NCBI GenBank assembly: GCA_024704765.1
Contig: JAKMXF010000318.1
Coordinates: 248,001 to 312,000 of the forward strand
Source: Oopsacas minuta
Taxonomy: Eukaryota > Animalia > Porifera
Direction of reading: 5' to 3'
DNA length: 64,000 nucleotides
Shown here: positions 18,550 through 64,000 of the stretch, in pieces
Position numbering within the stretch: the first letter of the stretch is position 1
How the letters are laid out: each line of letters starts with the position of its first letter
Notes under the pieces: model-generated
Told to the model about the DNA's origin: nothing
What the model saw: the letters and a program-made list of their open reading frames with translations, nothing else
The model's database searches: none
Translations under genes and position numbers: made by a program

Positions 18550-19043
18550 ATGGCTAAATTTATCCAGAAAGCTAAGTCTAGATTCCACTTCGCTACACAG
18601 GGAGGATCTGGTACTGTACTCGGTGCTTCGAGTGACCCAAAATCTCCTCAACCTCAACTTCCTTCTCCTGTCACTACTCAGCCTGCAGCTAGACCGTAAG
18701 TTAATATACTTACCTAAGCTTATGTATTATTGCTATTCCTTGTGTTATTATAGAGAGAGCAGTTCTTCTAAAACAGCTGGAGAAGCTGCCTTAGCTCGCT
18801 ACGAGAATAAAACCACAGGACAGAAACCACGACCTGTTACTACGAGCTCGGGTCCGGTTGCTAGGAAAGAGATAGGAATGTTGAGGGAAGCTAGAAGAGA
18901 AATAGAGAGAGAGAAGCCTCCTCAAGATAACACAGATAAAGTAGCAGTTAAGATAGCTAAGAAATTAACAATAGATCAATCTAATGAGCCTGTTAGAAGT
19001 ACTGTAGGAACAGCTAGGGTACTCGTTGATTGTCCTCTAACAG
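18550..19043 (+). CDS. UBXN6: UBXN6/UBXD1 exons 1-2 (18550-18695, 18754-19043)
   Basis: MAKFIQKAK start, VIM-like AGEAALARYE, ends VLVDCPLT-G; 58-nt phase-2 GT-AG intron; donor CAG|GTTAG at 19044. Confidence 0.85.
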
Positions 19044-19137
19044 GTTAGCTAATAGTAATACCATTATGCTCTACATAGGTGGATAACTAATATGGCAGAT
19101 AACTATTCGTATGCTTTTAGTAAGAATTAGAGTTTAA

Positions 19138-20397
19138 ATGTCTGAATTGACTCATCGCATAAAATCTATGGATAAAGCTACCAAGCCTGAGCCTCAAGCA
19201 GGAGAGAGGATACCTACTAATCCAGTAGTATCTAATTGCTCTGTGTGTATGAAAATACTCATTTCTCTCCTTGTTGTTATCGTATCAATCATAATCGCCA
19301 TTCCTTCTCCTATTTCTCCTGTCTCTTATACTCTTTCTGCTGCTAATCCCAATCTATCAGATGACGTTACCAATATCCTTAAAGTATCTGAGAAGATTCA
19401 TCTACCAGGCTGTGAGTCTGTTGTAATAGACTCTAACGGATATATATACACAGGGACTTATAACGGATTGGTTGTACAGATATCTCCTGATTTCTCTGAA
19501 GTCAGACCCCTGATACGTACAGGCTCTGCTCCTGTAGACGATGATAAGTGTAATAATAGCTCTCTAGCTGATAACGTCACTGATTGTGGGAAGGTTATGG
19601 GAGTTCGTATGCTGAATGAAGATACTCTGATTGTGGTAGATTCTATGTATGGAATATTCTCTATTTCTATAAAACTCAAGTCTAAGACCCTTCTATTCGA
19701 TCTCAAGAATCAACCTGAGTACCTAGACATACCTATAATTCTCCCAAACAGTGTAGTTATACTACCAGATGATAACAGTTTATTATTCACTGATTCTTTC
19801 ACTAAATTTACTCAAAAGAGAGGCATACTTGCTTTAATAGAACACGGCACAGATGGTAGAGTGTACAAATATGATTTTAACACGCGGAAAGTAACACTTT
19901 TCCTCTCAAACTTACACTTCCCTAACGGAATAGAGCTCCATAGAGACGGAGAATCAATCTTAATAGCAGAATTCTCTATTTGTCGTATAATTCGTTATTA
20001 CTACAGAGGAAATAAGAAAGGGACGACAGAGATATTCAGTGACAACTTTATTGGGGTACCGGACAATATCCAGAGGGCGAGAGGGAGTGGGTATTGGGTA
20101 GGGGTCCCCTTAGAACGAGATAATGTGTATGACGTAATGCTTAAGTACCCAATAATAGGATCTCTTATAACTAAGCTATTTGATGCTGAATTCCTTGAAA
20201 AACAAACTACTACTAATTTTGGGAAGGGGATTGCTGTGAAGTTGAGTGAGGAGGGGGAGATGTTAGAATTCGTGTATGATCCCGAAGGGGAACATGCCTA
20301 TTTCGTCACCGAGGCTGTAGACAGTGATAATGGATTCCTATACTTCGCTTCATTCTCAGGGGACTATTTCGTACGAACCTCGTATCCTATTCAATAA
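19138..20397 (+). CDS. APMAP: Strictosidine-synthase-like / APMAP-like beta-propeller, nested on the same strand in UBXN6 intron 2
   Basis: N-terminal TM, GCESVV, CGKVMGVR, LPNSVV, FTDS, DGRVYKYD, LHFPNGIEL, GVPDNI. Confidence 0.8.
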   Translation: MSELTHRIKSMDKATKPEPQAGERIPTNPVVSNCSVCMKILISLLVVIVSIIIAIPSPISPVSYTLSAANPNLSDDVTNILKVSEKIHLPGCESVVIDSNGYIYTGTYNGLVVQISPDFSEVRPLIRTGSAPVDDDKCNNSSLADNVTDCGKVMGVRMLNEDTLIVVDSMYGIFSISIKLKSKTLLFDLKNQPEYLDIPIILPNSVVILPDDNSLLFTDSFTKFTQKRGILALIEHGTDGRVYKYDFNTRKVTLFLSNLHFPNGIELHRDGESILIAEFSICRIIRYYYRGNKKGTTEIFSDNFIGVPDNIQRARGSGYWVGVPLERDNVYDVMLKYPIIGSLITKLFDAEFLEKQTTTNFGKGIAVKLSEEGEMLEFVYDPEGEHAYFVTEAVDSDNGFLYFASFSGDYFVRTSYPIQ

Positions 20398-20517
20398 TAA
20401 TACGTATTAACATTTAGACAACACTAGAATGTGATTATCATGCTTTTTCGTTATTTTATATGTCTATATATAGTACAGTATGTTGTTGTGAATACTGTTT
20501 ATGAATTTATTTTATAG

Positions 20518-21488
20518 GAAAAACAATAGAGTATGGACAGAGACTATCTCATCTCCAGAACGCACTACAGGACATGTACCTACAGGAACCTCTGTACGCC
20601 TCCTGTCTCATGATACACACCCTAGGTACAAACTCCCCACTCACTACTCATCTAGTAGGTACTAGTGTGGGACTAATAGAGAAGGATAAATTGACTGCTT
20701 GCATAGAAACAATCAATAAATGTTTGAAGAATATTCTAGAACATCCTGATGAAGATAAGTACAGAAGTATACGATGTGAAAGTAAAGTACTCAAAGATAA
20801 AGTATTGCCTGTTACAGGATCAGAGCTATTCCTCAGTTCAGTAGGATTTGTACAAGAGCTGAATGACTATCAGGGAAACGAAGTGTTATTCTACGTTCTA
20901 GCTAAACCCAAAAATGTTGATGAAGTAGCTACACAGATGGAACACTTGACTACTGCTTTTGATATGTTGAATAATGTGACTCCTGTAAAGTTAGAATTGA
21001 ATAGAGACATACATGTATATAAAGCTACGTCATCAGTTAACAGATTCCCAGAACTACCTTCATCATTCTTTATCCTAAAACCGGAAGAAGTTATGAAAGA
21101 GAATCAGCTGAGAAGAGAACAGGTGGAGATTAATGAGATGTTATTAACTCGTGCTCAGAGAGAGAGACTAGAACAACAAACTACTAGACAGTATCAGTTC
21201 TGTGTGGTAAGAGTCAGATTGCCGGAAGGAATAGTTCTGCAAGCAACTTTCAGAGCTAAAGAGAAACTGAGTGATTTGTTTTATTTCCTAAGTCAGTCGC
21301 TTAGAAACGAAGCTATGCAATTTTCATTATTTCATCAGGGTGGTAAGAAATTAGAAAATATGAATCTATCTCTCCAAGAAGCTGAGCTAGTCCCTGCCGC
21401 ACTCGTGAACTTACGTATTGACTTAGGTTCACAGACTGATGCAATTCTAAAACCATCCTTAATGAGAAATATTGAAAGAATGAGCTAA
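20518..21488 (+). CDS. UBXN6: UBXN6 3' exon(s): PUB and UBX domains
   Basis: Acceptor TTTATAG|GA at 20517 restores CPLTGKTIEYGQRLSHLQNAL; PUB (NILEHPDEDKYRSI), UBX (VRVRLPEGIVLQATF, LVPAALV). Confidence 0.9.
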
Positions 21489-21742
21489 TTGATTCTAGGA
21501 TGGCACGAACCACTGAATTATTTGTTTTTCATACTACGTCACTGGAATTAATTACTGAGAAACTCAAATTGTTAATTAATTGACTCACCTTGTATGGTAG
21601 TGACATATATGTCAATGATTGCTTGCAACTTCATATTTATGAAGAGATAGCTACATGTTTGGTATAAAAGTGTGCTATAGCTGAAGTTGTATAAATTCTC
21701 TGCATTTTTGTTTCGATATTATACACATATATTATATTATTA

Positions 21743-23020
21743 ATGGCTTCTAATATTACTGAATTTGAGAGTTTTGAGACTTTGGTAGAGAAGCTCCGTC
21801 AGGAAATCAGATGCAGATGTCACGAGTTAGTATGGATTATACAGACAAGAGAGTCAGAGCTGTTGAAAGAATTAGAATCAATTGCTATACCCCAAAAGGA
21901 TCGGAAGAGACAGGAAGGAAAATTAAAAGAACTCAGAGATCTCTATGACCTGAATGAACGTAACTTCAGATCTAACGAGCTACAAGCTGTACAGCAGAAT
22001 ATTCTAGAGGGATTGAGTAATGAGATTAACAAGTTAAAGAAAGAATTAACTCTCCCATATGGTTTCTCTTATAACCCAGATATTGTTCAAAATCTGAGAG
22101 ATTTCGGTGAACTTAAGACGATTGTAGCTAAACAGCCTATTCCACCAGTTCCATCCTACAAACCTCCTCTTCCATCAAGTACAATTGTGCCTAAGCCTGC
22201 TGTCTCTGTCTACAGCACGATAACGCATCCTATATACGGTGTGTGCAATAAAGGAAATGGAAGCGAGGATCTGGATAGAGCATGGGGTATAGATATACAC
22301 TATCCAACAGGGAATATATTCATAGCGGATCAATGTAACCATAGGATACAGGTATTTAATGGGGACGGTGTACATCTACTCACGTACTTAGTCTCATCGG
22401 GTAGAGGGCAGATGAAATGGCCAATATGTCTAGCAATACATAATGATAAGCTATTTGTCAGTCAGCACGGTAACGATTGTGTAACTGTATTTGGAATGAA
22501 GGGCTCTTTCGTAAACCAGTTCGGAAAGTCAGGCAAGAAGAACGGAGAGTTCAAATCTCCTCGTGGAATAACCATGGAGGAAATGAGTGGAGACATTTTC
22601 GTATGTGACTACGGTAACAACAGAGTACAGGTATTCACTGGAGATTACAAATTCAAGTCTAAATTTGGTATATTTATCCATCCTATGTGTATACAGCTAT
22701 CTGGTACCTGTATTATCGTACTAGATGAAGGGAACCCTTGTTTGCATATTTATAATCTTAACCAAACTCTGAAGAGAAGCATTATCAGCAATGGACTGTT
22801 TGGACAAGTACGGTCTCCAAGGACATTCTGTCTAGACTCTATTGGGAATATTCTAATGACGGATAATGACTGTAATTGTATATGTATCTTCAATCCAGCG
22901 GGAGTACTCGTCCACCAGATTACCAAGGGTGTTCTAAGACCCGTAGGGGTCACACTTGACACCAGAGGTCGGATAGTACTCGTATCTCATCGTGACGATG
23001 ACTGTCTACAATTCTTCTAA
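21743..23020 (+). CDS. Coiled-coil + NHL-repeat beta-propeller protein (TRIM-NHL-like, no RING/B-box)
   Basis: N-terminal coiled coil, Pro-rich linker, NHL repeats (AWGIDI..IFIADQCNHRIQVF, SPRGI..IFVCDYGNNRVQVF). Confidence 0.85.
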   Translation: MASNITEFESFETLVEKLRQEIRCRCHELVWIIQTRESELLKELESIAIPQKDRKRQEGKLKELRDLYDLNERNFRSNELQAVQQNILEGLSNEINKLKKELTLPYGFSYNPDIVQNLRDFGELKTIVAKQPIPPVPSYKPPLPSSTIVPKPAVSVYSTITHPIYGVCNKGNGSEDLDRAWGIDIHYPTGNIFIADQCNHRIQVFNGDGVHLLTYLVSSGRGQMKWPICLAIHNDKLFVSQHGNDCVTVFGMKGSFVNQFGKSGKKNGEFKSPRGITMEEMSGDIFVCDYGNNRVQVFTGDYKFKSKFGIFIHPMCIQLSGTCIIVLDEGNPCLHIYNLNQTLKRSIISNGLFGQVRSPRTFCLDSIGNILMTDNDCNCICIFNPAGVLVHQITKGVLRPVGVTLDTRGRIVLVSHRDDDCLQFF

Positions 23021-23109
23021 TATTATCTATACATGTATTCTATATATTGTTGGTTTGAGTAGTGTAAATATTTGCAACTAAACATTATTAATTTTTATTC
23101 AACAGTGCA

Positions 23110-24712: not shown

Positions 24713-25424
24713 ACGGGTGAGTACTAAAAAATTAGACAATTTTCATCTTGTTTGAGTATGTAACAATTATCAACAGAGTATTGTATAATTCGATCATATT
24801 TGTTTAATTACATTTTCATTTAGCTAGAACTCAATGGATCGCTGCTAATGGGCCATTGTCTGCAGATTTTCGGATATTCGTCTTGACAATTCTTGTTCGA
24901 GTTTGCTATCTGGGACTCGCTTACATTTACGATATGTAACACCATTCTCTTTGATAATCTTACGAACATATGATTGAGAGATATCGAATTTTCGAGCCAT
25001 TTTTCTGGTGGAGACTCCAATTTTATTGCTAATTTTGCACAATAGAGATCGCCGGAGCCTCTTGGGCATTTTGACAGACTTGCGACCGCTACCCAACTTC
25101 CTGTTTAGGGTTCCTCTATTCTTGATAGTAGAAATGATGTTGTAGATAGTAGATCTTGCGATTCCAAACGCCAAAAAATGCTTAACAGTATAAGAAATCC
25201 CATACTCATAATTTTTACGAAAAAATTGTCCAATAATGTGTCGCCGTTGTGTCACTTTCAAATGATCCATCTCCAGATGCTATGTTCTAAAATAATCGAA
25301 AATGGTTTGAATTTGAAATCTATATACAAGTAATGCATTGGTGAAAAAAAGATTTATGAATTTGGAAATATCTCGTTGTTATGGTGAACTACAAAATATG
25401 TCTGAAAGTTTAGTGCTCACCAGT
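24713..25424 (-). mobile_element. Internally deleted Tc1/mariner-superfamily (maT/DD37D-like) element, 712 bp
   Basis: 26-bp TIRs 24713-24738 and 25399-25424 (20/26 match), TA at 24711-12 and 25425-26; contains a transposase fragment. Confidence 0.8.
24845..25270 (-). pseudogene. Truncated transposase (N-terminal HTH DNA-binding region only)
   Basis: GIARSTIYNII, RKLGSGR, STRKMARKFDISQSYVRKII, YRKCKRVP; no DDD catalytic domain; W-P-like remnant in another frame. Confidence 0.75.
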
Positions 25425-27671: not shown

Positions 27672-28522
27672 ATGGGAGAAGATTTAGTATACGCGGAGCT
27701 ACCCCCTGATGAGGGATTAGAGATCTACGAGGAGTTGGTTACAGAAATGGGACAGCCTGTTGAAAAACCTGCTCAAACAAATGGACCTCCTCCTGTACCT
27801 TCATCTAATAGACCGCTACCCCAGGCACCCTCACTCCCTGAGAGAAATCAAGTAACGCCACAGAGAGCGCCGCCTATTGCAGGTAAAGGTAATAAATCTA
27901 CCTTTTTTGACCAACAGCCATCACCTACCAAGAGGCCAGCTGCTGCTTTGCCCCCTGTTCCTACTCAACCGGTACATGCAGGAGGAGAGGAGCTCAGGGT
28001 CTCACAGGCCTTCCAGATCTTCATACAGTCCAAGAAGACTGGTACCTCCAAATCACGATACTCTACCCCCTGGGCCAAGAGGACAGATACAAGTGGTCAA
28101 GAGATGGAGTTTATATCTCTACAAGGATCTGATTCTAACATTCCATTTGTACCACCTAATATCCTGGTGAAGATGCCAGAAGCAACTGAAGTAGCTACTG
28201 GGAATTATTTACGTCTTTTCATCCCTCCAGCTTCCTCTTCACAGCAACCTCCACAAAGATCTACAGCTGGTATAGAGATGGAAAACTCTACAGCAGCTGG
28301 AGAGGATGGTCAAGAACTTGTCTATGATGATACAATCAATGCTAACACAGAGGAGACTTATGATGACGTACTTCAAAAACCAGACGTAATACCTAAAACA
28401 GCTGACGATTTTAACCAGGATACACATAATGACGTAAATATTAAACCATCTGAAGAAACGTATGATGACGTAACAGTAAGACAGGAGGATACTTATGATG
28501 ACGTAATCCAAAAACCAAATAA
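27672..28522 (+). CDS. Exon 1 of a FYB/ADAP/PRAM1-like adaptor (Pro-rich region + YDDV repeats)
   Basis: PPPVP and RPLP motifs, repeated (E/D)TYDDV; frame ends at a consensus donor AA|GTAAG (28523, phase 2). Confidence 0.7.
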
Positions 28523-28574
28523 GTAAGCTATTCGTCAAAGTAATAATATTATCCATATGTAGATTCTATAGCAG

Positions 28575-29559
28575 CTATTTGTTAGCTTTTGGATCCATGG
28601 TTATTATTAGAGCAATGAGATCCTCACTTCCTTCATCTAACCAGAATTCACACTTCTCTGTCACTAGCAGACTGTCCTGTTTCTTGAGATTATCCACCTC
28701 TACTGTACCAGCTGTTGTCTTGACTGTAGCTTTACAGCTTCCTTCTAACACCCAGATGAATGCTTCTAGTCCAGCTGGTGTGGTTGATGGTCCGTACTTT
28801 GCACCCTTAACCGCCTCGACCCTCAGCTCTCCTTTTCCGAATATTGAGCTGGTAGTGTTATGTTTCATATTTGACAGGTAGGTGTTGAGTGTCATGGGAG
28901 CTGTCACTTCTGTCGAGACGTCTAACTTGATGGGAGGGTCTGTGAACACCCTACCAGCTGGGGGTTGTCCAGTCTTGTGTTCCTCTGATGCGAAATATTC
29001 TCCTATCACTGGACCTAATAAATGCAGTAGAATAAATCTAATTAATATATATGTTTAGTGAATAGCATACCTAACTGCTTTCCTAGATCATAGCAATAAA
29101 ACCATTTCTCCCATAGAATATCAGTAGACCCCTCCTGATAGTATCTCAATCCATCTGTCTCGTGTTCGTATCTCTCTCTCTCTACCACTAGTCCTACTGT
29201 ATTAGCTTGTCTCTGAGGAGAATGGGGTATCCTGCTGGGTAGTTGGAACATCTCGCCTTCCTTTATTACTATATCTTTGTGTTGCCCTATACAATTATAA
29301 TATAATTTGTTTTTACTTATATAAATGTTTGTATACCTTTCTCTACAATCTTCAGTACCATGTCTCCTCTTATTTGATAGAACAACTCCTCCCCTTCTTC
29401 CATATGGTAATCCTTTCTGACATTAGGACCTCCTATGAACATTATCTTTAGTTGTCCTGCCCCATGCATCAACTTGTTGCAGACAGGAGGGACGAAGCTT
29501 GGCTCGTTTGTAGTTATCCAATCTGGGATGTTGAATAGTAGAGTATCACTCGCGGCCAT
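28575..29559 (-). CDS. HAAO: 3-hydroxyanthranilate 3,4-dioxygenase; exons 29337-29559, 29071-29286, 28575-29014 (292 aa); nested antisense in the FYB-like intron
   Basis: [49 protein letters not shown]; 50- and 56-nt GT-AG introns give 879 nt in frame. Confidence 0.95.
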
Positions 29560-29819
29560 TTGCTTTAGAGATTTGTAATATCGCTTGTATGCGAAAACAG
29601 TATTCTCTATAAATTAACCTCCTCTAATGTAACTATTTTGGTTTCGTAATAGTTCACGATTATACAACATATTGCATAAGTATGACAGCATAGCAATTCT
29701 TCTATCCTGTATTTCCCCTCTAATCTATATTTCTTCATTCATATAAATGATTTTCAGAATGACAGAATATTTTGACACTTTTGGATTATAAATAGTAACA
29801 AATCCATGAGTTACCTTAC

Positions 29820-30194
29820 ATGGCAGAAGCTACGCCAGCTGGATTAGTAGATAAGCTGCGACTAATAGAGTTTATATTAGTTGATAATTGGGCGGAGATA
29901 TGTCATGGAGTTAGGTTTAAGGATCTGTTGGATATCAATAAACTAGCTCGTACTAAGGCTGTAGAGTTTAAAGATAAAATGAGAGATCCCCGCTTCACAG
30001 AGGAAGAGAGAGCTATCGTATCGAATGAGAACTTATATGCTATAAGAACTCTAGCGAGTAAATCTAGTAAGGATAGACAATCAGCTGATGAGAAGGGTGC
30101 GAAAAAATTGAGTGAGGAGAAGAGAGAGTTAGAGCAACAGAAGGAAGTTATAGAGCAAGAGTTAGCTAATGTCCATAAGCAACAGAAGAATTAG
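29820..30194 (+). CDS. Hypothetical 124-aa helical/coiled-coil protein inside the FYB-like intron
   Basis: ATG-to-TAG ORF with codon usage like neighbours; in-frame TAA at 29796 argues against it being a FYB exon. Confidence 0.5.
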   Translation: MAEATPAGLVDKLRLIEFILVDNWAEICHGVRFKDLLDINKLARTKAVEFKDKMRDPRFTEEERAIVSNENLYAIRTLASKSSKDRQSADEKGAKKLSEEKRELEQQKEVIEQELANVHKQQKN

Positions 30195-30345
30195 ACCTAT
30201 TTAGATATCATAAAGTCTCCCATGGGATATAGCATAGCTTTACAATCGCTACTGCTTCTTTGTAATATATTTGTGCGTTAACAAGATTTGTGTTTGTTTG
30301 TTACAATTAAAAACTGTTTATTATTAATTAATTGCATTCGTGTAG

Positions 30346-30778
30346 GAAGTTTGCTGTAACAGAGGAGTTAGTCTATGATGACGTAGAAATTACCCCTCGC
30401 GGGAGTAGGGCGAGTTCTCCCACTCCAAGCGGTAATTCTGTAGCTAGTGCTAGCTTGAAGACGAAAGACAAGAAACAACAGAAACTTGATAAAGACAAAG
30501 CTAAGAAACGAGACAAAAGTGTTAAACATTTCAAACAATTCGGTCTGAAGACGAGCGATCCTTCTATACAGGAATTAGTAGCTACTGTATCAAGCGAGAA
30601 GAGTAAAGATAAGGATATGTTACAAATCGCGATAGGCGAGAAAGTACAATTAGTTATGAGGGATCATCCTAAAATGAAGCCAGACATGTGGCTAGTAGAG
30701 AAATCTGATGGTACGATGGGACTAGCTCGAGCTAATATATTCGCAGAGGGAGAAGCTGAGCTGTATGAAACTTGCTAG
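30346..30778 (+). CDS. Exon 2 of the FYB/ADAP-like adaptor (YDDV + helically extended SH3 domain)
   Basis: Acceptor GTGTAG|G at 30345 is in frame with the phase-2 donor; ELVYDDVE, basic helix, LQIAIGEKVQLV, WLVEKSDGTMGL, ends ELYETC. Confidence 0.7.
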
Positions 30779-36698: not shown

Positions 36699-39600
36699 AT
36701 GAACTCTGACAGTGAGATCTCATCAGTAGACTCTCTTCTCAATAAACTCGATCTGAGCGATAAAATCAAATCAAGAATATCAACGGTATTCGCATCAGAA
36801 GGATTGAATGATCTATCTTTAAATACTATAATAGAGTTTAGTGATAAAGAGCTGAAGGATATTGGATTAACTTTATTAGAAAGAAAGTCTTATACCAAAG
36901 CTTTAGGCAATATAATATGGATACAATATTTTGATAGTATTAGCTTGCTAGCGAATGAACACGTTACAGAGTCTTTGAAGTATCCTAAGCTAGCTGGTAT
37001 TTGTAAAGAATTCTTCTCTCTTATCATCCACGTAGTCTATCAATTCGAGCATATGGATTTACAGGTTAATTGTACCAGGGATACAGACTTATATTTGTCG
37101 ATATTCGATCAGACTTCACCGGATGCTTTCTATCTGCAAGCATTAGAAGTAAGGTGTCTGTTACAACAGAGATTAATTGATTTGAAAGATTCTGCCTATC
37201 ACTTCTATAACTATAAAACAGACTATGCAGAACAGTTATGGTCTAAAGAGGCTTGTAAACACATAAATATACTGATCAGAGAGATAGATGCATATTCTGA
37301 GAGATTGATTGTAGCTTGCACTAGACCACCTAGACTGTACTTATTCTTTGAAGCGTTAGAATTGAATAAGAAAGAAAGACTAGCTCTTCTGTATATTATA
37401 TTTAATAATATGCCTTCTTCATTATTCGCGAGGAATTGTCGTGAATGTGTTGAAAAGCGCACTCAGGGACCTCTAGGAGGATCCATGCAGGCTCTGGCGT
37501 CAATTTTCGCAGAATTCACACCCTATGAGAATCTGTCCTTTTTCCATATGTCAGACCGTATTCACCTTAAGCAGGAATTATTCGAAACGGACGACTTTAC
37601 TACACTCCTGGACGCTCCCCTTCTTAAAATATCTCCTCAGACCTTATACTCTCTGTGCGGGGGAGAACTTACCCCTGATGACTTCTACAAGATAGACAAG
37701 ACTGCTCTAGCTGATATTCTATTGCTAGAGGATAGCAGTAAATTGTCTGACGTCATGCTGACTACTCATGAGTCATCAGAGAGTGATGAAGATTATCATC
37801 AATCTACCAAAAATGGAGATGTGAAAGCTGGTATGGAGGATCTAGCTATAGTCAATTCTAAGCCTGATTCAGTTAAACCTGACTCTTCTGTATCAGAACA
37901 CGGAGACGATGCCTCTAGCTTTCAAGCATACACAACTGATCTAGAGTATCTACAGGATAACCTAGAGTACATATCAGCACTGATAAAAGTACAACAAGCA
38001 AGTAGTGAGGATAATAATCTTATTCATCAGAAGAAATCAGCAGAAGTAGTGACTAGAGAGCATCAGGCTAAAGCTAGAGCTATGAGGTCTAAAGTAGAGC
38101 GTCGTCTACAAGTTACACTTCATAGTGATAAGTTTAAACCTAAGCTAGAGACTCTGAGTGCTACACACGGATTGTGTGGATTTGAGAAAGAAGTTCTGTT
38201 GATTCTATGCGGTGCAGTTGTATCACCAAAGTTCCAACAGACTGTTAACGATTTGATTGGGGTTAAGAGTTATTTTATGTCACGCCTATCTATCGGTATG
38301 ATAATTAGTATTCTATCTAATGACGTCAGGAAGCAGATAGAGGCTAGAGTACATTTCTACAAGTCTGGGAAGCTTGTTAAGAACGGATTTGTGAGGGTAA
38401 TTGATAACATATTCCGTAAGAGTAATATCCTAGACTGTGAGGTGTTGATAGATAGACAGATGTTAGACTATATAGTAGGTCTAGACACAGAGATAGGAGA
38501 GCTAGTGGATGGTAGCGAGCTAATAACCCCCAAGATAACGCTTGATAAAGTATCGCTACCCCCTGACGTCAAGAGCTCTATCATACACTCTGTGCAGTCT
38601 CATGAAAAGTTTAAAGAGATAGTTGGTGAGCTTGAGTTAGGCAATAAGAGTTCTATATCACATTTCAATAAAGGACTAAGGATGCTGTTTCATGGACCAC
38701 CAGGCACAGGTAAGACTATGACAGCTCATGGACTGGCAAACCATTTAGGTAAGAAGCTGTTAACGATCGGTTTATCGTCTTTCCCAGAAGATATATCATT
38801 CTCTGAATTTTTAAAGTTTTTATTCAGAGAATGTAAGATACACAATGCTATACTATTCTTTGATGAGTGTGAGTTGTTGTTTCATAGTCGTGATATTTCG
38901 CGAAATGACATACTTTCATCTCTACTCACAGACATAGAAGATCACACAGGTATTATTATCCTAGCAACCAATAGGCCTGCTAATCTTGATGAAGCATTCC
39001 ATCGCCGCATTCAGTTGTCAGTACCGTTCACTATCCCAGACTTCAAACTCAGAGCTCAGATCTGGGAGTCTCATGTACCACATAACATGGTTGACGTCAT
39101 AGATTGGGAGGAGCTAGCTAGTAACTGTGAACTGACCGGAGGCCTGATAAAGAACGCTGTATTGAGTGCTATAGCTGTAGCTATAGAGAGACAGGAGACT
39201 CCTCTTAAACTTACATTACAGGATCTGTCTAAAGGAGCGAAAAAACAGCTGAGAAATATGCTAGAAATGTGTGATTTTGAACATCGTGTTATACCGGATA
39301 CAGGTTTCAATGGACTAGCTTTTAACGCTGAGGTTATGGCAGAGCTATCAGAGTTTGTAAAGGCTGCTAAATCCAGTAGACTCCTGTCTACTCAGTGGGG
39401 GTTTGGCACTTCTAAGGCTAATTCTGCGCTTTGTGGCAGCTTAACAGCTATACTATGGGGTGTCAGTGGATCTGGTAAGACTTCAGTAGCACACGCATTA
39501 GCTTATGAACTGAGTCAACCGCTAAAAGTCGCGAATGTATGCGAACTGTTAGCACACGGGAAAACTAACGTTAACAGGAATAGAAGTTTAGCTGTATTCT

Positions 39601-40302: not shown

Positions 40303-40803
40303 TTATTTCCAGCCTCTGCCTTCGAAGTTGTCGAATGCGTTATGTACCTTCACAACTTCTGCCATGTGTAGTCCCGTATCTCCAGCAAGGATACTTTTCT
40401 GGAAGAGTAAGACCCCTAGGGCCTGGGGGAGGAGTAACATCCGTTTGTTCCTTAGTACCCCGTCAACGATACTGTCTACTGCCTCCTCGGGACTGTAGGA
40501 CTTAATAGTAGATCCCCTTTGAGCACCCTTGGCTAGAGGGGTGGATACAAAGTAAGGATGAACACAGGATATAAATATTCCCTTGGGGTTTGATATAGTA
40601 GCTAGCTTCTTCATGTTAAATAATTCGCAGTACAGAGACTCGGTTAGACCTGTAACCGCGAATTTAGAAGCGCAATAGGGGGCTAATCTGCTCACACCGA
40701 ATAGACCAGCTGATGAGGATATTGACACGATATGACCTCTGTTCCTCTCTAGCATACCGGGCAGGAAGGACTTTATTGTCCAGAAATTGGACATGATATT
40801 AAT
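40303..40803 (-). CDS. Exon 2 of a short-chain dehydrogenase/reductase (SDR16C, RDH10/HSD17B11-like)
   Basis: Acceptor TTATAG| at 40804 gives INIMSNFWTIKSFLPGM; GHIVSISS, catalytic YCASK. Confidence 0.88.
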   Translation of the reverse strand: MNIMSNFWTIKSFLPGMLERNRGHIVSISSSAGLFGVSRLAPYCASKFAVTGLTESLYCELFNMKKLATISNPKGIFISCVHPYFVSTPLAKGAQRGSTIKSYSPEEAVDSIVDGVLRNKRMLLLPQALGVLLFQKSILAGDTGLHMAEVVKVHNAFDNFEGRGWK

Positions 40804-40836
40804 CTATAACAAATAATAATAATAAATTAGTTATTA

Positions 40837-43800
40837 ATGGAGGAAGAATTGAATAAACTCAAACAGAAGATTAAGCTATGGGAACATGGGTTCAAATCTA
40901 GAGAGGGTAGGGCTCCTGATAAGTCGGATATAGACAAGAGTGATACTAAGGAAGATTATCTAAGATATAATCAGCTGAAGATACACAAACTAAATTGTAA
41001 TAAAGAGATTGATAATAAAAACAAGATTCCTGAATGGAAAAAGTTAAGTACAAAAAGCTTCTCTTTGGAAAGAAATAGAAAAGTTCAGAAGGAAAGTTCA
41101 GTTGTAAAAGTTATAGACATTACCTCAGAAGAGATTGTAAATAATCCAATTTCACAGCCAGAGCTGAGTAATGAGAATATTAGCTTGACAAATGACAGGC
41201 CAAATCATGTACATATTCCTGCTCCCTCCAGTTTAACATCCATGAAGAGAGTACCCTCTCAAGAGGACACACAGTCACCCACACGTATACCACAACATTA
41301 TAACTTAGTACAGAAACAAAAGGCCCGTGAGTTATACAGCAGGACAATATCTACAGAATGGATAGACAGACATAGTGCTGATATAGGTGAAGATATATGC
41401 AACCCGAATACTTGTAACAACAGCTCTTATAACCAAAACAGAAATATAATTAAAGAACCTATAGCATCTACTCTATTTACTAGGCTGTATGAAGTAGACA
41501 CACCCCGAGAGGACACCCCTCTGATGAATTTAGGGATAGAGGAGCTGATTGAGAAGTGTTCTAATCAACAGCTGATAGAACCAGATATTACCCACAAGAG
41601 TGACATCCCTCCTTCTAATAGCAGTATAGAACCAACTACTAGCAATGTTACAACAGTGGAATGCAGTGTAACAGAGGAATCTAGTGTTCGAGACGATGTG
41701 ACTGAGCTCTTAGAAGAATCAGAATTGTTAGAAATAGAACACTTTAATGATATAACTCTGGATAAAGATGAAAATATTATAGATCAGAAATCTAACAAAG
41801 ATATCTCTTCTCTAGCTCTAGAAATAACAGATACTCCCTGTACACATAATTTAGAAGTAAGCGAGGTTATAACTGGACAGAAGAGAACAAGGAAATCAGC
41901 TGTTCCAAGCTCAAAGCGTCCTAAACTCAACAATTCTCTTAGTGATAATTTTGTGAGATTGGATCTGAGAAGGAAGCATTATAAAGCTAAAGGTAGAGGG
42001 ATGTCTGCAAAGACCTATAAAAGGAATATGTTTAAGAAGAAACAATTCGATAATGATCGTGGGGGTGTGTCACACAGGGGTGGGGGTATGGGTAAGGGGA
42101 CTAGATGCTTTAAGTGTGGAGAGGTAGGACATTGGGCTAGGAACTGCTCCAAGAAAGTAGCAGAGAATGATTTGGGTAAATTCGCGGGAGAGGCTTGTAG
42201 TTACCAGGATACTGATACGTGTGCTGAAGATGAACAAGAAATATTTGAGTCTCCTCTCCCTACGTTAGAGGAGGCTGGGCTTATGGCTCAAGGCAAGACT
42301 CTAACAGAAATAAGAGACACAGGAGATAGAGAAGATAGCATACACATACCAATGGGTGCTATGGTTACTATGAACAATACTATAATAAGACAGGAAATAG
42401 ACCCGCTATTCCCAGAAGACATGACTCAGAGAGAGATAGAGGATAGATTGGATACAGCTCTTAAGACCCTTAATCACACCAGCTTCAGAGAGGGACAGAG
42501 ACAAGCTGTAACGAGGATACTACAGGGCAGATCCACTCTTGTACTGTTAGGTACAGGAGGTGGTAAATCCCTCTGTTATCAACTACCAGCTATGATGTAT
42601 GCACAGAGACAGAGCTCTACTGTACTAGTTGTATCACCGTTAGTATCATTAATGGAAGATCAGTGCTTACACATGCCATCTGTAATCAGTGCTACTTGTC
42701 TACATACTAATCAAACTCCAAAGCAGAGAGAGAAAATACTACTAGCTATGAAGGAGAATAAGTTCTCTGTAATATTACTGTCTCCAGAGATGATAGCTTC
42801 TCAGGAGAAGAATGTTAGCGAAGTGTTCTCTCTCCTCCCTCCTATCCCATTCGTGTGTATAGATGAGGTACATTGCCTGTCTCAATGGTCTCATAACTTT
42901 AGACCCTCCTACTTGAGACTGTGTAAGCTAATCAAGGAGAGGTTTGAAGTCAGCTGTATCCTGGCTCTAACAGCTACTGCTACTATTAATACTGTTAATG
43001 ATCTAATGACTCGTCTGAGAATAACCAATGAAGATGGAGTTATAAAAGGGCCTATACTACCCAGCAATCTTAACCTGTCTGTATCTCGGTCACAAGATCG
43101 TGATAATGCTCTTATAGAATTGTTTAATACAGACAGATACACAAATCTAACTTCTATAATAGTCTATTGTATTAGACAGAAAGAGACTGAGAGAATAGCA
43201 CAACTCCTACGTATCTGTTTATCCGACCCTTCTACAGGGAAATCCTCTATCTCTAGAGTAGCAGAGTGTTACCATGCTGGTATGACAGCACACAAACGAA
43301 ATCAGGTACAGAAAGGATTCATGACTGGTAAGCTTAAGATAGTAGTAGCTACTCTAGCTTTTGGTATGGGACTTAATAAATCTGACGTCAGAGCTATAAT
43401 ACACTACAATATGCCTAGCAGCTGTGAAAACTATGTACAAGAGGTAGGGAGAGCAGGGAGAGATGGAGTGACGTCATATTGTCGTGTGTTCCTTGATGCG
43501 GATAATGCGGATCTCAGTGAGTTAAGGAAACATGCTTATGCTAATGGAATGGATAAACAAAGTATTAAGGGTTTCGTTAAGGCTGTGTTCCCAGCTTGTG
43601 AGTGTGAATTTTTGCGAGATAACAATATAGAGTGTCCCGGTCATAAAGTAGGACTGAGTATTGACAGGTCTGTGACAGATTTTGACATACCAGAAGGCAG
43701 TCTAGGAACAATGCTATGTTACTGTGAAGAGAGAGGATGGATAGATTTGTCTAGACAGCAGTATGATACCTGTCATATCAAATGCTACGGGAGAGAAAAA

Positions 43801-44481
43801 CAGCTGAGGAGGCTAGCAGAAAAGATGCCAGTCATAGCAGCAGGTATAGCTTTACAAAACAGCTGTGAAGCTGTTAAAAAAGGTTGTGTGAGTGTTAGAA
43901 TATCAGAGGTAAGTAGGAAGATGGGATGGGAGTATACTACACTAAAGAGAGAGTTAGGATCTCTTGCTTATAATGACAGAGGAACTGGAGGAAAGCAAGG
44001 ATCTAGTGTTATCGTTGAAATGACAGATCTAGCTTATATATTCCAGATGTATCATCGTGATGATAACAGTATACAGGATATTGTTAGATTCCTGGAAGAA
44101 AAGATACAAGATACTGAATTAATGTCTTTAAGCAAACTAACGCTATTCTCTAACATGCTGACCAGCACCGCTAGTGATAGAGATGAGACTGTATTCAGGG
44201 AGAGGATTAGAAAATATTTTGAAGAGAACATGAGTGCTACCATCCCTCCTAATCTCACAGACCTTACTATACTCCCACGACTGAGGCAAGAGATCAACGC
44301 ATTTATCACCACACACACTGATTCTAAATTAACAGGAAGAATTATAGCTAGAATTTTCCAAGGTATTTCTAGTCCTAATTACCCAGCACATATGTGGGGG
44401 AGTACTCCTTACTGGAGAAGCTATATGGCTACTGATTTTCATATGATTAGAAAGATGGCGGAGAAAGAACTACAGAGCTAA
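40837..44481 (+). CDS. RECQL4: RecQ4 helicase, single exon, nested antisense in the SDR intron
   Basis: Sld2-like N-terminus (KIKLWEHGF..GRAP), Zn knuckle CFKCGEVGHWARNC, GTGGGKSLCYQLP, DEVH, QEVGRAGRDG, GRIIARIFQGISSP. Confidence 0.95.
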   Translation: MEEELNKLKQKIKLWEHGFKSREGRAPDKSDIDKSDTKEDYLRYNQLKIHKLNCNKEIDNKNKIPEWKKLSTKSFSLERNRKVQKESSVVKVIDITSEEIVNNPISQPELSNENISLTNDRPNHVHIPAPSSLTSMKRVPSQEDTQSPTRIPQHYNLVQKQKARELYSRTISTEWIDRHSADIGEDICNPNTCNNSSYNQNRNIIKEPIASTLFTRLYEVDTPREDTPLMNLGIEELIEKCSNQQLIEPDITHKSDIPPSNSSIEPTTSNVTTVECSVTEESSVRDDVTELLEESELLEIEHFNDITLDKDENIIDQKSNKDISSLALEITDTPCTHNLEVSEVITGQKRTRKSAVPSSKRPKLNNSLSDNFVRLDLRRKHYKAKGRGMSAKTYKRNMFKKKQFDNDRGGVSHRGGGMGKGTRCFKCGEVGHWARNCSKKVAENDLGKFAGEACSYQDTDTCAEDEQEIFESPLPTLEEAGLMAQGKTLTEIRDTGDREDSIHIPMGAMVTMNNTIIRQEIDPLFPEDMTQREIEDRLDTALKTLNHTSFREGQRQAVTRILQGRSTLVLLGTGGGKSLCYQLPAMMYAQRQSSTVLVVSPLVSLMEDQCLHMPSVISATCLHTNQTPKQREKILLAMKENKFSVILLSPEMIASQEKNVSEVFSLLPPIPFVCIDEVHCLSQWSHNFRPSYLRLCKLIKERFEVSCILALTATATINTVNDLMTRLRITNEDGVIKGPILPSNLNLSVSRSQDRDNALIELFNTDRYTNLTSIIVYCIRQKETERIAQLLRICLSDPSTGKSSISRVAECYHAGMTAHKRNQVQKGFMTGKLKIVVATLAFGMGLNKSDVRAIIHYNMPSSCENYVQEVGRAGRDGVTSYCRVFLDADNADLSELRKHAYANGMDKQSIKGFVKAVFPACECEFLRDNNIECPGHKVGLSIDRSVTDFDIPEGSLGTMLCYCEERGWIDLSRQQYDTCHIKCYGREKQLRRLAEKMPVIAAGIALQNSCEAVKKGCVSVRISEVSRKMGWEYTTLKRELGSLAYNDRGTGGKQGSSVIVEMTDLAYIFQMYHRDDNSIQDIVRFLEEKIQDTELMSLSKLTLFSNMLTSTASDRDETVFRERIRKYFEENMSATIPPNLTDLTILPRLRQEINAFITTHTDSKLTGRIIARIFQGISSPNYPAHMWGSTPYWRSYMATDFHMIRKMAEKELQS

Positions 44482-44523
44482 TAAATCTAGAAACACATTT
44501 TAATTGTTAATTAATAAACTTAC

Positions 44524-45000
44524 TTGCATTGTTTTCTCTATAGTCTCATCACTCGTCTCTAGCAATCTTCTTCCACACATTATACCTGCGTTATTTATCA
44601 GCATACTAACTTCACCTACCTCACTCTTGACACGTTTGGCTACTTCGTATATTTTATTACGGTCTGATACGTCACACGTATACCCCCAAGCCTGTATCCC
44701 TCCCTCTTTTAACTTGTCTACCGTCTCCTCTAACTGTTTCTCCTGTATATCCCAAAGCACTATTTTAGCTCCTAACTTACCAAACCTCTCTCCCATTATA
44801 GCCCCCATACCCATAGCACCCCCAGTTATAAGTATGATGTCATCCTTAACTGATTTACGGGGTGGTGGAACGAAATGTTGGTATATTCCTATTGGGTTGT
44901 AGTAGCAAAGAGTCAGTAGTACTTTGAATTGCTTTGGTGCGAACACTGCCAGTACTATTACTAGCAATGCGATTACTCCTACGATGAATTGGAACCACAT
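44524..45000 (-). CDS. Exon 1 of the SDR16C gene
   Basis: N-terminal TM, ITGGAMGMG, VLWDI, CDVS, LINNAGI; donor CAA|GTAAGT at 44523, phase 0. Confidence 0.88.
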
Positions 45001-45179
45001 TTCTCCTGCCTTATATCTATCAGGTTATTTATAAGTATAATAAGCAGTGCATAAGTATACTGTAATATGATTCCTAATTAATCCCCAATTACAATTACAG
45101 TACAAGAGTTTATAACCGATATGATAGTGTTTATAGCATTTGACATGATCATGTTTTGCTACATAAGATGACTCCTAAG

Positions 45180-45272
45180 TAGCGGTTCCCAACCTTTCAC
45201 CCGTGGATTGTGGAACATTTAAGCTAATTTTTACACACTCTGTGGGTCCTATGGGGTGGTTGGGAACCTCTT
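45180..45272. mobile_element. hAT-like MITE relic with the same terminal motif as 6165-6295
   Basis: TAGCGGTTCCCAACC ... GGTTGGGAACCTCTT; perfect 11-bp inverted pair 45184-45194 / 45258-45268; no clear TSD. Confidence 0.5.
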
Positions 45273-45334
45273 CCATAAATTTAGATAATTAAAGTGTGGA
45301 TAATGAATTTAAGAATGAAATAATCCTCATATAA

Positions 45335-60020: not shown

Positions 60021-60920
60021 ATGTCAGTTCCAGCTGATTCTGATCGTGTATGTACTACCTTCCCGAAGGTTAAGGAGGTAAGGGCCTATATCAAGGACTC
60101 CGAGAAGGGAGGACAAGTTGGACAAGGAGGGGATTGTCATGATGTACCCACGGGACACTGGATAGGCGGGAGTGCTCCCCACATGCCAATCGCTAACCCT
60201 ATGTCTGGATACGAGATGTACGAGGACGACCGGAATTCTTGGGGTATCGGAGCTCTAGGCAGTCTGGTAGTTGAGGTAGAGACGACAGAGGGGGACAAGG
60301 GGGTGGGGGTGAGTCTAGGGGGAGAGGCAGGGTGCTATATCGTAGAGAAACACCTCTCAAGGTTCGTAGAAGGACAGAACCCAGCTGATATTGAGCTCAT
60401 GTGGGATCAAATGTATAAATCTACTATCAATTATGGAAGAAAAGGATTACCATTACAAGCTATTAGTGCTGTGGATTTAGCTTTGTGGGATCTGTTAGGA
60501 CATTTGAGGAGAGAGCCTGTCTATCAGATGCTGGGGGGCAGAACCAAGCCTTATCTACCTGTATACTCTACTACATGTGATGCTCTACAGGCTAAGAAGT
60601 TTGGGTTCGTTGGTGCTAAGATAGGATGTCCTTACGGTCCTAGTGCAGGGGGGGAGGGGCTGAAGAAGAACGTAGAAATGTTCAAAAATACTAGGAAGCA
60701 GGTTAAGTAATAATATCTATTGGTTATATACTCCTGGATTGAATGCTGTAATACAGGTAGGAGATGAATTCCCTTTGATGCTTGACTGCTACATGGCTCT
60801 AACACTATCATACTCTATACAGCTAGCTAGAGAACTTAAGGATCTTAAGTTCAAGTGGATAGAGGAAGCATTACCCCCTGATGATTATCAGGGATACAGA
60901 GAACTTACTAGTGTTTGCAG
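60021..60920 (+). CDS. L-rhamnonate dehydratase-like enolase-superfamily gene; exons 60021-60701 and 60757-60920; 3' part absent from this window
   Basis: GGDCHD..HWI..PIANPMS, GSLVVEVE, GCYIVEKHLSRFVEG, SAVDLALWDLLG, LMLDCYM, WIEEALPP; 55-nt phase-0 intron; ends at donor CAG|GTAAGA. Confidence 0.85.
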
Positions 60921-60991
60921 GTAAGATAAATACTTGTCATAAATTTGATTGTATATATAAGTGTCAATCAATAACATACGATAGAGATAGC

Positions 60992-61540
60992 TCAGTGTTT
61001 GTGTTCTCTGGATAGGAGAGATACACCCTTGATTAGCGTGTGGTCTGCTACTTCATCTTGATAACTAGCTGTTGTTAGTACTGTAGCTGTTACAGGGAGA
61101 ATCAATGTATTGATTTCTGAGATAATCTCTAAATTGTGTTCCACATGTCCTTGTCCTATCTCTCCCATAACTCCCACAGGTACTGCATACACTTCTATCT
61201 GGAATGAAGAACTCATACCAGCAGCAATTGGATGTGGAGTGTATATGATCTTTATACCGGTAGAAGGAGGAGGTGGCTTAATCTTATATCTATAATAAAT
61301 ACTAAATAACTTAGCTATCAGATAGCTATATAGTCAATACCTTGTACTTCTTATTCCAGTATTCTTTATGATTACTGTGTAAGAATAATTGCATCCTTCC
61401 TCCAGCATTCCAAAGTCTACTTCTGTCTCTAGGAGACTGATCCCCTGCTTCAGATTCTTGGAGAGGGGCATAGATAGAGAGGCAGTGTTTAGTTGCCTCT
61501 TGGTCTCATCTATGCACTCTCTATCTCCAGGTCTCAATGT
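60992..61540 (-). CDS. SPAG17: SPAG17 last two exons (61341-61540, 60992-61289)
   Basis: DFGMLEEGCNYSYTVIIKNTG-R-YKIKPPPPSTGIKIIYTPHPIAAGM..HNLEIISE..LPVTATV; 51-nt phase-2 intron. Confidence 0.82.
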
Positions 61541-61830
61541 CTATAATAATAATAATAAGCAATAATGTTATAGCAGCTCACGATCTGGTTCGTGACTATT
61601 GTATCTATGGTTTTTTGTTTAAATTGCAATAGAGTCACGAGAAATTACATTATTCATTAAGTTCACAAGCCTGAGAGTCTTGTGATAGTATTTAAATGCT
61701 TCTAATTATGAATTACGTAATGGTAATATACAAGGAATGCTAAATTGACTAAAATAGTTATAGGGATTGGTAACCGAGTTCGTTAGGTATATATTCGAGA
61801 ATTCAGTAATATGCACACCAAACTGATTCA

Positions 61831-62679
61831 ATGGAAGTTATCTCTGTTCCTTTATCTACCCCCTCAAACTCTGAGAAAGAGTTTAGGAAGATGGATGAAG
61901 ATCCAGATTCTGCTCCCGAGCTAGTCAAAGAAACTTACAGAAAGATGCACACTTTCCAGACCGTTGAGTTTGGGAAGAAAATGCGAGAGAAGTGGGGCAA
62001 ATACAATTACTGTGAAATGACAGTTATGGAAGCACTGGACACATTGAATGAGTTGGTGGATGAGAGTGACCCTGACTTTGTAGGACTGCCCAATAACTAC
62101 CATGCATTCCAGACGGCAGAACTGTTGCGTAGATACAACCCAGATTTAGATTGGTTACATGTAGTAGGACTTATACATGACATGGGTAAGGTGATAGGAC
62201 TAGTGGATCCTGATACAGAGCAGTGGGCACTTGTAGGGGACACATTTCCTGTAGGGTGTGAACCTCAGAAATCTGTGGTATTTCAGAATCTAGGATTTCC
62301 TGAAAATCCTGACACCAAAGATCCTCGTTACAACACTAAGCTAGGAATGTATCAAGAGAACTGCGGACTAGATAACGTAATGATGTCATGGGGACATGAT
62401 GAATACTTGTACAGAGTACTCAAGAACCATGTTAATATGAAACTACCAGATGAAGCTCTGTTCATTATCAGGTACCATTCATTTTATCCGCTACACCATC
62501 GAGATGATTATCAGTATCTACTCAGTGATGCTGACAAAGATAAGATAAAGTTGGTTAAATTATTCCAAAAATTTGATCTATACAGTAAGGAAAAAGATGC
62601 TATCCCAGAGGTAGATCAGCTGAAGGATTATTACCAGAAGCTCATAGACAAATATGTCCCTGGTAAGATAAAGTTCTGA
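61831..62679 (+). CDS. MIOX: myo-inositol oxygenase, nested antisense in a SPAG17 intron
   Basis: VDESDPD, HAFQTAE, LIHDMGK, VGDTFPVGC, SWGHDEYLY, IRYHSFYP, DLYSK. Confidence 0.95.
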   Translation: MEVISVPLSTPSNSEKEFRKMDEDPDSAPELVKETYRKMHTFQTVEFGKKMREKWGKYNYCEMTVMEALDTLNELVDESDPDFVGLPNNYHAFQTAELLRRYNPDLDWLHVVGLIHDMGKVIGLVDPDTEQWALVGDTFPVGCEPQKSVVFQNLGFPENPDTKDPRYNTKLGMYQENCGLDNVMMSWGHDEYLYRVLKNHVNMKLPDEALFIIRYHSFYPLHHRDDYQYLLSDADKDKIKLVKLFQKFDLYSKEKDAIPEVDQLKDYYQKLIDKYVPGKIKF

Positions 62680-62775
62680 CTAGCTTATCTCTCTCTTACT
62701 AGCTTATATCCTCGCTAGCTAACTTATTTATTATTCACGAATATCATACGTAATGTTAGTTACTTTAGTATTTAC

Positions 62776-64000
62776 CTTTAGAGAGTTGGGTAGTTTAACT
62801 GGTGCTGTTCTGGGAATTCCTGCTACGTTATAGAATAAATACTCAGGTATAGGGTTAGCCGTATCCTCAGCTCCTGCTGCTACTGGTGTAGCTTTATTAG
62901 GACGGTCTGTATCTGTATCTATTGGCGGTAGCTTAGAGGGAGAGAACACAGGACTCTCCTCTGTAGTGACTATACTAGGATCAGCTGATGTAGATATATG
63001 AGGTGATGGGTTATCAGGACGATCTCTAGCTAGAGATACAGTAGATGTAGAGTTATCTGGGAGTAGAATAGTAGTGCTAGCATAACCTGGGACTAACTGT
63101 CCAGCTTCTTGAGATAGCTCTGATAGACGTGGGTTAATCAATCTCTCAGATTTAAGGACAGGTTCAGGAGGGGTATTACCACGACCTCTACGCATTGCTA
63201 TAGGGAGTTCATCTGTTAGACGCTGTATATCAGGGGGATTGTTCTGTAGAAATTTGTTACCATCTTCGCTATAGAAATAACCAGGTATATCTTTTGTACG
63301 TAATGCTTGCAGGTTAGCTTGAAACTCTTCCAGCTCTGCTCTATCAGCTTCTACTCTCTCAGGCCTTCTCTCAGAGGATGCGTGTATTGTCTCCTGAGTA
63401 GGAGGTGATAGCACTAGGTCCTTGAACTCTTGTATCAGTTTATCATCATTATCTTCTGTGTGTATATTATATCTATTGAATATGTCAGTAGCTTGTTCTT
63501 GTACTGAGTCAGTTTTTATCTCTACAGGAGAGAAGGAGTCTCTCTCCTTATTTATTTCATCCCACCAGGAATTAACTGCATTCAAGCTAGCTACAAAAGC
63601 ACTCATCATTTCCTGCCCAATTGGTTTATGTTCTAACAACTCTCTGCGTCTAAAACCGCGAGGAACCTTCTTATTCTCTGTACGTCTAACAACAGTTCCT
63701 ATATCCAGGCCACGACCCACCCCGCTACCAAATACCATATCTTTATCTTTCTCACATTTGTTTAAGCCTAGAGGGAAATAATACTGAGTCCTCAGGTTTA
63801 TAGGTATAATGTCATCCTCTGTATAAGGGAGGTGTGTCAACTTGTGAGAGGGAGTGTTAATAGGACTAATAACGGAGTGTACAATAACAGTAGAGTCTCC
63901 AGGGAGAGCATGTGATTGTAACAACATCCCATCTTTAGCACGCCATCTCTCCAATTCCTTTCCTGAGTATTCCTTGCTGAGCAGTTCTATGCCAGATCCG
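62776..64000 (-). CDS. SPAG17: SPAG17 internal exon running off the right edge
   Basis: Frame open to the window end (GSGIELL...), EDDIIPINLR, FGSGVGRGL, NVAGIPR..VKLP; phase-0 donor AAG|GTAAAT at 62775 (alternative at 62763). Confidence 0.75.

Follow-up and report, generated by a model that had tools for sequence, protein, structure and literature searches.

Long introns that carry whole genes in a compact, conserved block of the Oopsacas minuta genome

We analysed a window of 64,000 nucleotides (nt) of the genome of the glass sponge Oopsacas minuta (positions 248001-312000 of contig C318; the genome, G000, comprises 61,460,524 bases in 365 contigs), in which whole genes lie inside the introns of other genes. 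Published accounts describe this genome as 61.46 Mb in 365 scaffolds (Francis et al. 2023, PMC10282587, Table 1) and as 365 scaffolds with a GC content of 36% (Santini et al. 2023, PMC10280926); GC content in the window was 0.34-0.42. Long open reading frames (ORFs; at least 100 amino acids (aa), both strands) covered 88% of the window bases, and the largest ORF-free gap between positions 18550 and 64000 was ~480 nt. Over positions 18550-71102 (those beyond the window end at 64000 being C318 coordinates minus 248000), the introns counted fell into a short class (eight, of 50-58 nt) and a long class (six, of 1.2-9.7 kb), with no intermediate sizes, and all six long introns were filled with genes. 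Nested genes made up 8 of ~28 genes, six of the eight being antisense to their host and two lying two levels deep. ATG-to-stop ORFs with full Pfam domains (Str_synth, 3-HAO, the RecQ4 domains, MIOX and zf-TRAF) lay inside the intron bounds, and the remaining genes in 18550-64000 each had an ATG close to the start of one single ORF. The nested genes are classical, ordinary genes, mostly antisense and mostly single-exon.

The first host gene, UBXN6 (UBXD1), occupies 18550-21488 on the forward (+) strand in three exons (18550-18695, 18754-19043 and 20518-21488) separated by GT..AG introns of 58 nt (18696-18753) and 1474 nt (19044-20517). Pfam found both PUB and UBX in UBXN6, and exon 3 aligned with residues 165-440 of human UBXN6 (E 1.7e-43); PDB sequence searches with the N-terminal exons gave no useful match. 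Exons 1 and 2 presumably correspond to the human N-terminus (MxKF..., AALAR, CPLTG), a likeness that the RNA evidence made unnecessary. Nested in the 1474-nt intron, on the same strand as the host, is a single-exon strictosidine-synthase/APMAP-like gene of 419 aa (19138-20397; Pfam Str_synth 3.2e-23). In the most distant of the relatives described below (L006:4789-5847), the PUB and UBX parts of UBXN6 fell in separate ORFs 55 nt apart, which suggests that this relative carries an extra short intron absent from O. minuta.

Splicing of UBXN6 across its nested gene was observed over positions 18400-24399 in contigs from three sequencing runs (X1, X2 and X4) of one sample. Runs X1 and X2 gave long contigs colinear with the assembly, as DNA does, and X4 gave 195 short contigs of very uneven depth. 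Contigs of X4 contained GT..AG joints that skipped the 58-nt intron (18695 to 18754) and the 1474-nt intron (exon 2 to exon 3), and both joints were absent from X1 and X2. The spliced joints, the leader-bearing contig ends described below and the uneven, fragmented contigs together indicate that X4 is RNA. Since the 1474-nt joint was present in X4 and not in the DNA runs, the spliceosome pairs splice sites across a 1.5-kb intron that contains a same-strand gene.

An SDR gene (Pfam adh_short) on the reverse (-) strand (40303-45000) consists of exon 1 (44524-45000) and exon 2 (40303-40803), which flank a 3720-nt intron (40804-44523) with donor GTAAGT (GT at 44523-44522) and acceptor TTATAG (AG at 40805-40804). 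The intron holds the single-exon RecQ4 gene (40837-44481, +, antisense to SDR; 1214 aa), in which Pfam recognised the Sld2 N-terminus, a zinc knuckle, DEAD and Helicase_C. RecQ4 occupies 98% of the intron and leaves margins of 33 and 42 nt. The adh_short domain was split over the two SDR pieces (profile positions 2-109 and 107-190), and exons 1 and 2 aligned with residues 17-147 and 148-304, respectively, of the full-length homologue P0137, so that they abut at 147|148.

The third host, which we refer to as host X, carries repeated YDDV motifs in both of its exons (27672-30778, +; exon A 27672-28522, exon B 30346-30778) and has a GT..AG intron of 1823 nt (28523-30345). Neither exon matched Pfam or PDB, and a word-based protein search returned only exon-sized ORF calls from glass sponges, with no spliced full-length relative; host X is thus a predicted glass-sponge-specific protein. 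The donor and acceptor are present, and the intron phase (phase 2) is kept in O. minuta and in two relatives, L005 and L006. In L006, exon B contains no methionine at all and therefore cannot be a stand-alone gene. Two genes lie in the host X intron. HAAO (3-hydroxyanthranilate dioxygenase; 28575-29559, -; Pfam 3-HAO 2.6e-29) is antisense to the host and has three exons, with introns of 50 nt (29287-29336) and 56 nt (29015-29070) whose splice sites were read off the sequence. The second is a 124-aa Met-to-stop ORF (29820-30194, +) that is conserved in L005 and L006 and had no Pfam match; its conserved stop is not accompanied by a donor, which excludes it as the exon that precedes host X exon B. 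It is doubtful that RecQ4 and HAAO are fully contained in their host introns at the transcript level, with margins of 33-50 nt.

At the right end of the region, nesting reaches two levels. The outer host is an RhmD-like dehydratase of the MR_MLE family (60021-71102, +, running past the window end), with exon 1 at 60021-60701, exon 2 at 60757-60920 and the last exon at 70601-71102. Its introns, for which splice sites were read, measure 55 nt (60702-60756) and 9680 nt (60921-70600), the longer one closing beyond the window. Pfam recognised MR_MLE_N and then MR_MLE_C in two parts (profile positions 40-92 and 93-218) that flank the 9680-nt intron and are contiguous at 92|93. Inside this intron are a SPAG17-like gene in its entirety and a gene for a CmcI-like methyltransferase; two introns of the SPAG17-like gene in turn hold MIOX and a zf-TRAF gene. 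The SPAG17-like gene (60992-69576, -, extending beyond the window), tentatively so named after the human C-terminus, has its last exon at 60992-61289, an exon at 61341-61540 and an exon from 62776, with introns of 51 nt (61290-61340), 1235 nt (61541-62775) and, past the window, 1422 nt (65083-66504). The 1235-nt intron holds the doubly nested MIOX (myo-inositol oxygenase; 61831-62679, +; Pfam MIOX 1.5e-101), and the 1422-nt intron holds the zf-TRAF gene. When the SPAG17-like gene is compared with a further relative, L001, the conserved stretch has its edges precisely at the splice sites, starting at the acceptor (TLRPGD...) and stopping at the donor (...NSLK). Residue-exact collinearity with a homologue (SDR) or a Pfam profile (MR_MLE) showed that these two hosts are spliced across their inserts. 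The same mode of splicing is indicated for host X and the SPAG17-like gene by the conservation of their splice sites, phase and exon edges. Three genes of the block are of bacterial type, namely the RhmD-like dehydratase (60021-60920 and C318:318601-319102), a tandem AAA+ ATPase (36699-40103) and the CmcI-like methyltransferase (C318:317684-318580). The RhmD-like dehydratase has spliceosomal introns and is therefore a resident sponge gene rather than contamination.

The same arrangement was found in loci from three other glass-sponge assemblies in ENA (L001, L005, L006, L032, L033 and L034), whose sideroflexin is 65-79% identical to that of the window. In L005 and L006, Str_synth lies between the same UBXN6 pieces, and HAAO and the small ORF lie between the host X exons. 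In L032, L033 and L034, RecQ4 is flanked by two adh_short pieces that lie on the strand opposite to it. L001 has the same gene order: downstream of MR_MLE_N, the SPAG17-like pieces enclose MIOX and zf-TRAF, and the L001 homologue of the MIOX-holding intron measures 1187 nt with MIOX inside. Because the same nesting recurs in three other assemblies, the arrangement is old.

These comparisons bear on the reading that there are no long introns here and that the host halves represent genes in their own right, remnants of dead genes or products of misassembly. Such a reading would fit the gene calls in the protein collection searched, which give each exon as an ORF of its own, and the absence of PDB matches to the UBXN6 N-terminal exons and to both host X exons. 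It conflicts with the RNA contig spliced over the 1474-nt intron in a sample whose DNA contigs are colinear with the assembly, with the alignment of SDR and MR_MLE to the residue, with the splice sites, phases and exon edges kept in the three other assemblies, and with the missing start codon of host X exon B in L006. An artefact of this kind is already contradicted for UBXN6, SDR and MR_MLE, and we regard it as extremely improbable for the block.

The first-pass annotation of this DNA had described four closed long introns with complete genes inside, and all four (1474, 1823, 3720 and 1235 nt) were recovered at the same positions with GT..AG boundaries and whole genes within; the margins that it had given as 33-290 nt were reproduced as 33, 42, 94, 120, 96 and 290 nt, and all coordinates that we compared agreed. 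Its claim that the spliceosome must pair sites across kilobases of coding DNA is borne out by the RNA joint over 1474 nt and by the junctions at SDR 147|148 and MR_MLE_C 92|93. Five of the seven short introns that it had listed could be located (58 nt at 18696-18753, 50 and 56 nt in HAAO, 55 nt at 60702-60756 and 51 nt at 61290-61340). Those of 53 and 87 nt were not found in the window, where a brute-force search for short GT..AG introns gave too much noise to be of use. The statement that the window has no long empty intron holds, since an ORF coverage of 88% with no ORF-free gap above ~480 nt leaves no room for one.

The loose ends of four X4 contigs shared the sequence TCTTCATAAAAAACTTAC, directly before positions 18547, 19119, 21787 and 23102, each at a genomic AG on the + strand (18547-18548, 19119-19120, 21787-21788 and 23104-23105). 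Three of the four acceptors lie 1-17 nt ahead of an ATG, namely those of UBXN6, the nested APMAP-like gene and a WD40 gene. At the fourth (21787-21789, +), the leader-bearing contig joins at an AG inside an NHL ORF, 45 nt past its first ATG (21743), and the next ATGs are out of frame; either the acceptor is a cryptic one or the start codon has been placed wrongly. Four genes for a spliced leader (SL) RNA were found in the genome (L007-L010, at C10:47273, C10:77411, C10:92158 (minus strand) and C16:67138 of G000). They read ...CTTACAG|GTAAGT, with the leader followed directly by a GT donor, and share 94% identity across a 200-nt stretch that takes in ~35 nt upstream. The leader is ~44 nt long and ends in ...TCTTCATAAAAAACTTACAG, after which GTAAGT follows. 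A AATTATTG stretch in these genes may be an Sm site, and no Rfam family matched them. A fifth copy of the leader, which includes ~22 nt of the upstream part (L011; G000:C314:274344-274361, minus strand), has no GT donor and continues directly into other sequence (...CTTACacagagatg...). This copy may derive from a trans-spliced mRNA by retro-copying, or it may be an SL gene that is no longer active. Thus, one leader was found at an AG on the mRNAs of unrelated genes, together with dedicated SL RNA genes that have a GT donor. A trans-spliced leader has been reported for the glass sponge Aphrocallistes vastus (A. vastus; PMC10282587), and hexactinellids are listed among the groups with SL trans-splicing (PMC7986045); the leader is therefore already known in kind in glass sponges and is not new.

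The nested APMAP-like gene receives this leader inside its host intron. RNA-like X4 contigs cover its coding region, and one leader-bearing contig starts at the gene, beginning at 19119 with the leader letters AAAAAACTTAC ahead, which places the acceptor at 19120|19121. Taken with the 1474-nt joint, this contig indicates that trans-splicing supplies the 5' end of the same-strand gene, at an acceptor 77 nt into a host intron that is removed in its turn. We considered an operon-like arrangement, in which the same-strand nested genes (the APMAP-like gene and the 124-aa ORF) have no promoter of their own and are cut from the host pre-mRNA by SL trans-splicing and polyadenylation, in competition with cis-splicing of the host. 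The leader on the APMAP-like mRNA at 19121 agrees with this, as do the long runs of same-strand genes in the window with spacers of 70-250 nt and one X4 contig that spans, without a break, the boundary between UBXN6 and the gene that follows it (21343-21816). Contigs do not show single molecules, however, even where they extend over two genes; six of the eight nested genes, being antisense, fall outside such a mechanism, and no operons have been reported for hexactinellids (PMC7986045). On balance we consider the operon-like arrangement unlikely, although not negligibly so. The broader proposal that glass-sponge introns serve as carriers of extra cistrons, so that one precursor would yield either the host mRNA by cis-splicing or the nested mRNA by trans-splicing and the balance between them would set relative expression, is similarly doubtful. 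If true, it would amount to an intronic form of operon in a phylum without reported operons.

It had been claimed from the window that this genome packs genes into introns systematically, with introns of ~55 nt unless they hold a whole gene. Over 18550-71102 the pattern is consistent with such a rule, as all eight located short introns measure 50-58 nt and all six long ones hold genes. Intron sizes elsewhere in the genome were sampled by a Pfam Pkinase search of O. minuta, after which 10 kb were fetched around ten interrupted kinase domains and missing kinase pieces were located with a profile derived from ten intact kinases of the same genome. The genome family search scores best candidates only, and the split SDR of the window itself was not reported by such a search. 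About 110 of the 127 scored kinase domains were uninterrupted single ORFs, in agreement with a reported value of 1.59 introns per gene and with the abundance of single-exon genes.

Eight empty introns were found in the ten kinase loci. Seven of them (221, 329, 390, 396, 411, 442 and 898 nt) had GT..AG boundaries and phases that fit the codon-aligned domain pieces, with a GC content of 0.28-0.37 and a longest open frame of 98 aa in any of them. The eighth, of 1364 nt (C321:504468-505831), splits the conserved KRMLE|VDQLKR of AMPK-alpha and has a longest open frame of 91 aa; the AMPK-alpha autoinhibitory domain was recognised just downstream. For L014, L015 and L018, the search did not recover the missing C-terminal kinase pieces. 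A miniature-transposon-like repeat with inverted ends (CAGTCAACTCCTGTTATATCGA ... TCGATATAACGAGAGTTGACTG) is present in two of the empty introns (L012:2070-2240, in AMPK-alpha, and L016:8590-8760), and insertions of this kind may be what makes those introns long. Coverage by ORFs of at least 100 aa in the ten kinase-flank loci averaged 51% (36-81%), with many ORF-free stretches of 0.4-3 kb, which makes the window ~1.7 times denser.

These eight GT..AG, phase-consistent empty introns of 221-1364 nt contradict the genome-wide rule, including its corollary that empty introns of intermediate size do not occur. Two further observations stand against it. The counterpart in L001 of the 51-nt SPAG17-like intron is 254 nt long and empty, and published mean intron sizes of 194-341 bp (PMC10282587, PMC10280926) imply a substantial tail, yet only 83 nested genes are annotated. 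As a description of the whole genome, the rule is now very unlikely. The accompanying view that nesting is unusual among animals was also overstated, as 12.4% of A. vastus genes are nested, a share published as comparable to other well-annotated animals. The concern that nested hosts are hard to annotate stands, given that the published O. minuta annotation contains only those 83 nested genes (PMC10282587, Table 1).

Taken together, these results are most probably explained by a hyper-compact, evolutionarily conserved gene block in which short introns are ~50-58 nt, long introns carry genes, the hosts are ordinary spliced genes, and the split in intron size is local and no rule of the genome. 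Compaction would have shrunk every shrinkable intron in the block to ~50-58 nt, and the six long introns (1.2-9.7 kb) would have stayed long in that each holds at least one functional gene and is not deletable. Bimodality would then be a local survivorship effect of extreme compaction. It does not extend to the genome as a whole, whose less dense parts hold empty introns of 0.2-1.4 kb. The GT..AG sites of the hosts pair across the nested genes, with the hosts otherwise normal. Messages, including that of the same-strand nested gene, would get their 5' end by SL trans-splicing at an AG a few bases ahead of the ATG, and this in turn may be what permits margins of only 33-290 nt.

Several points weigh against this explanation. 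RNA supports one long junction, in a single contig, and the five others rest on homology and conservation. None of the runs was recorded as RNA, and we infer the nature of X4 from its behaviour. Transcript ends of antisense nested genes with margins of 33-42 nt (RecQ4) were not observed. The kinase loci were chosen for an interrupted domain, so that they prove that empty introns exist and not how frequent they are, and gene-holding introns would tend to be missed among them. Survivorship under deletion bias is likewise something that we infer.

Beyond the genes discussed so far, the Pfam-named ORFs of the window, which made up most of its long ORFs, comprised, in addition to UBXN6, the strictosidine-synthase-like gene, NHL, WD40, HAAO, the tandem AAA+ gene, SDR, RecQ4, the MR_MLE dehydratase, MIOX and sideroflexin, the genes MRPS11, MORN, BTB-BACK, DBP10, XRN2 and a Tudor-helicase. 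Between the WD40 gene and MRPS11 (24845-25270, -) there is a 141-aa ORF with two helix-turn-helix motifs that resembles the terminal DNA-binding part of a Tc1/mariner transposase; no gene was called at this place in the relatives L005 and L006, and the ORF appears to be an insertion specific to O. minuta. In two relatives a gene with a P53 domain lies between the WD40 and SDR genes (L033:5484-6584 and L034:5402-6754), a place where O. minuta (45001-45334) and L032 have only a spacer of ~335 nt. This copy appears to have been lost locally in O. minuta and L032.

Within ~52 kb, models of at least five hosts (UBXN6, host X, SDR and the RhmD-like and SPAG17-like genes) thus require introns of 1.2-9.7 kb. 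Such introns are easily missed with a maximum intron length of 5000 and with a gene predictor that does not model nested genes by default. For O. minuta, RNA was mapped with a maximum intron of 5000, and Braker/Augustus were used (Santini et al. 2023, PMC10280926), so the 9680-nt intron would be missed in mapping; low nested-gene counts, including the 83 of O. minuta, have been tied to gene-predictor settings (Francis et al. 2023, PMC10282587). Gene counts and claims of gene loss in O. minuta depend on correct models of nested genes. The locus is a clean example of an extreme of compaction at which splicing still works across kilobases, and it shows a nested gene that receives a leader inside an intron that is removed.

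Compared to the closest known system, A. vastus, the block shares the features of a glass sponge with a small compact genome, short introns, many single-exon genes, nested genes and a trans-spliced leader (PMC10282587). That species has 2432 nested genes (12.4%), many of them conserved with O. minuta, and these genes have been said to pose difficulties for automatic annotation (Francis et al. 2023, PMC10282587). The A. vastus paper differs in that it does not treat these loci, multi-level nesting or local all-or-none intron sizes, and O. minuta introns are shorter on average (PMC10282587). Abundant conserved nesting and a leader are thus already known for glass sponges, the local size pattern does not generalise, and the block is no new kind of genome organisation. 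Relative to nematode and Oikopleura SL trans-splicing with operons, O. minuta likewise has a common leader from an SL RNA gene with a GT donor, joined at an AG just 5' of the ATG, and very short spacers between co-oriented genes; it differs in that polycistronic precursors are not shown and the leader has no Rfam family. Nested genes of Drosophila and human are also complete genes in host introns, mostly on the opposite strand and crossed by host splicing (PMC5174743). There, however, they take up a small part of large, mostly non-coding introns, whereas the nested genes of O. minuta fill up to 98% of theirs, and with margins of 33-290 nt their transcript ends must therefore overlap host exons or arise by trans-splicing.

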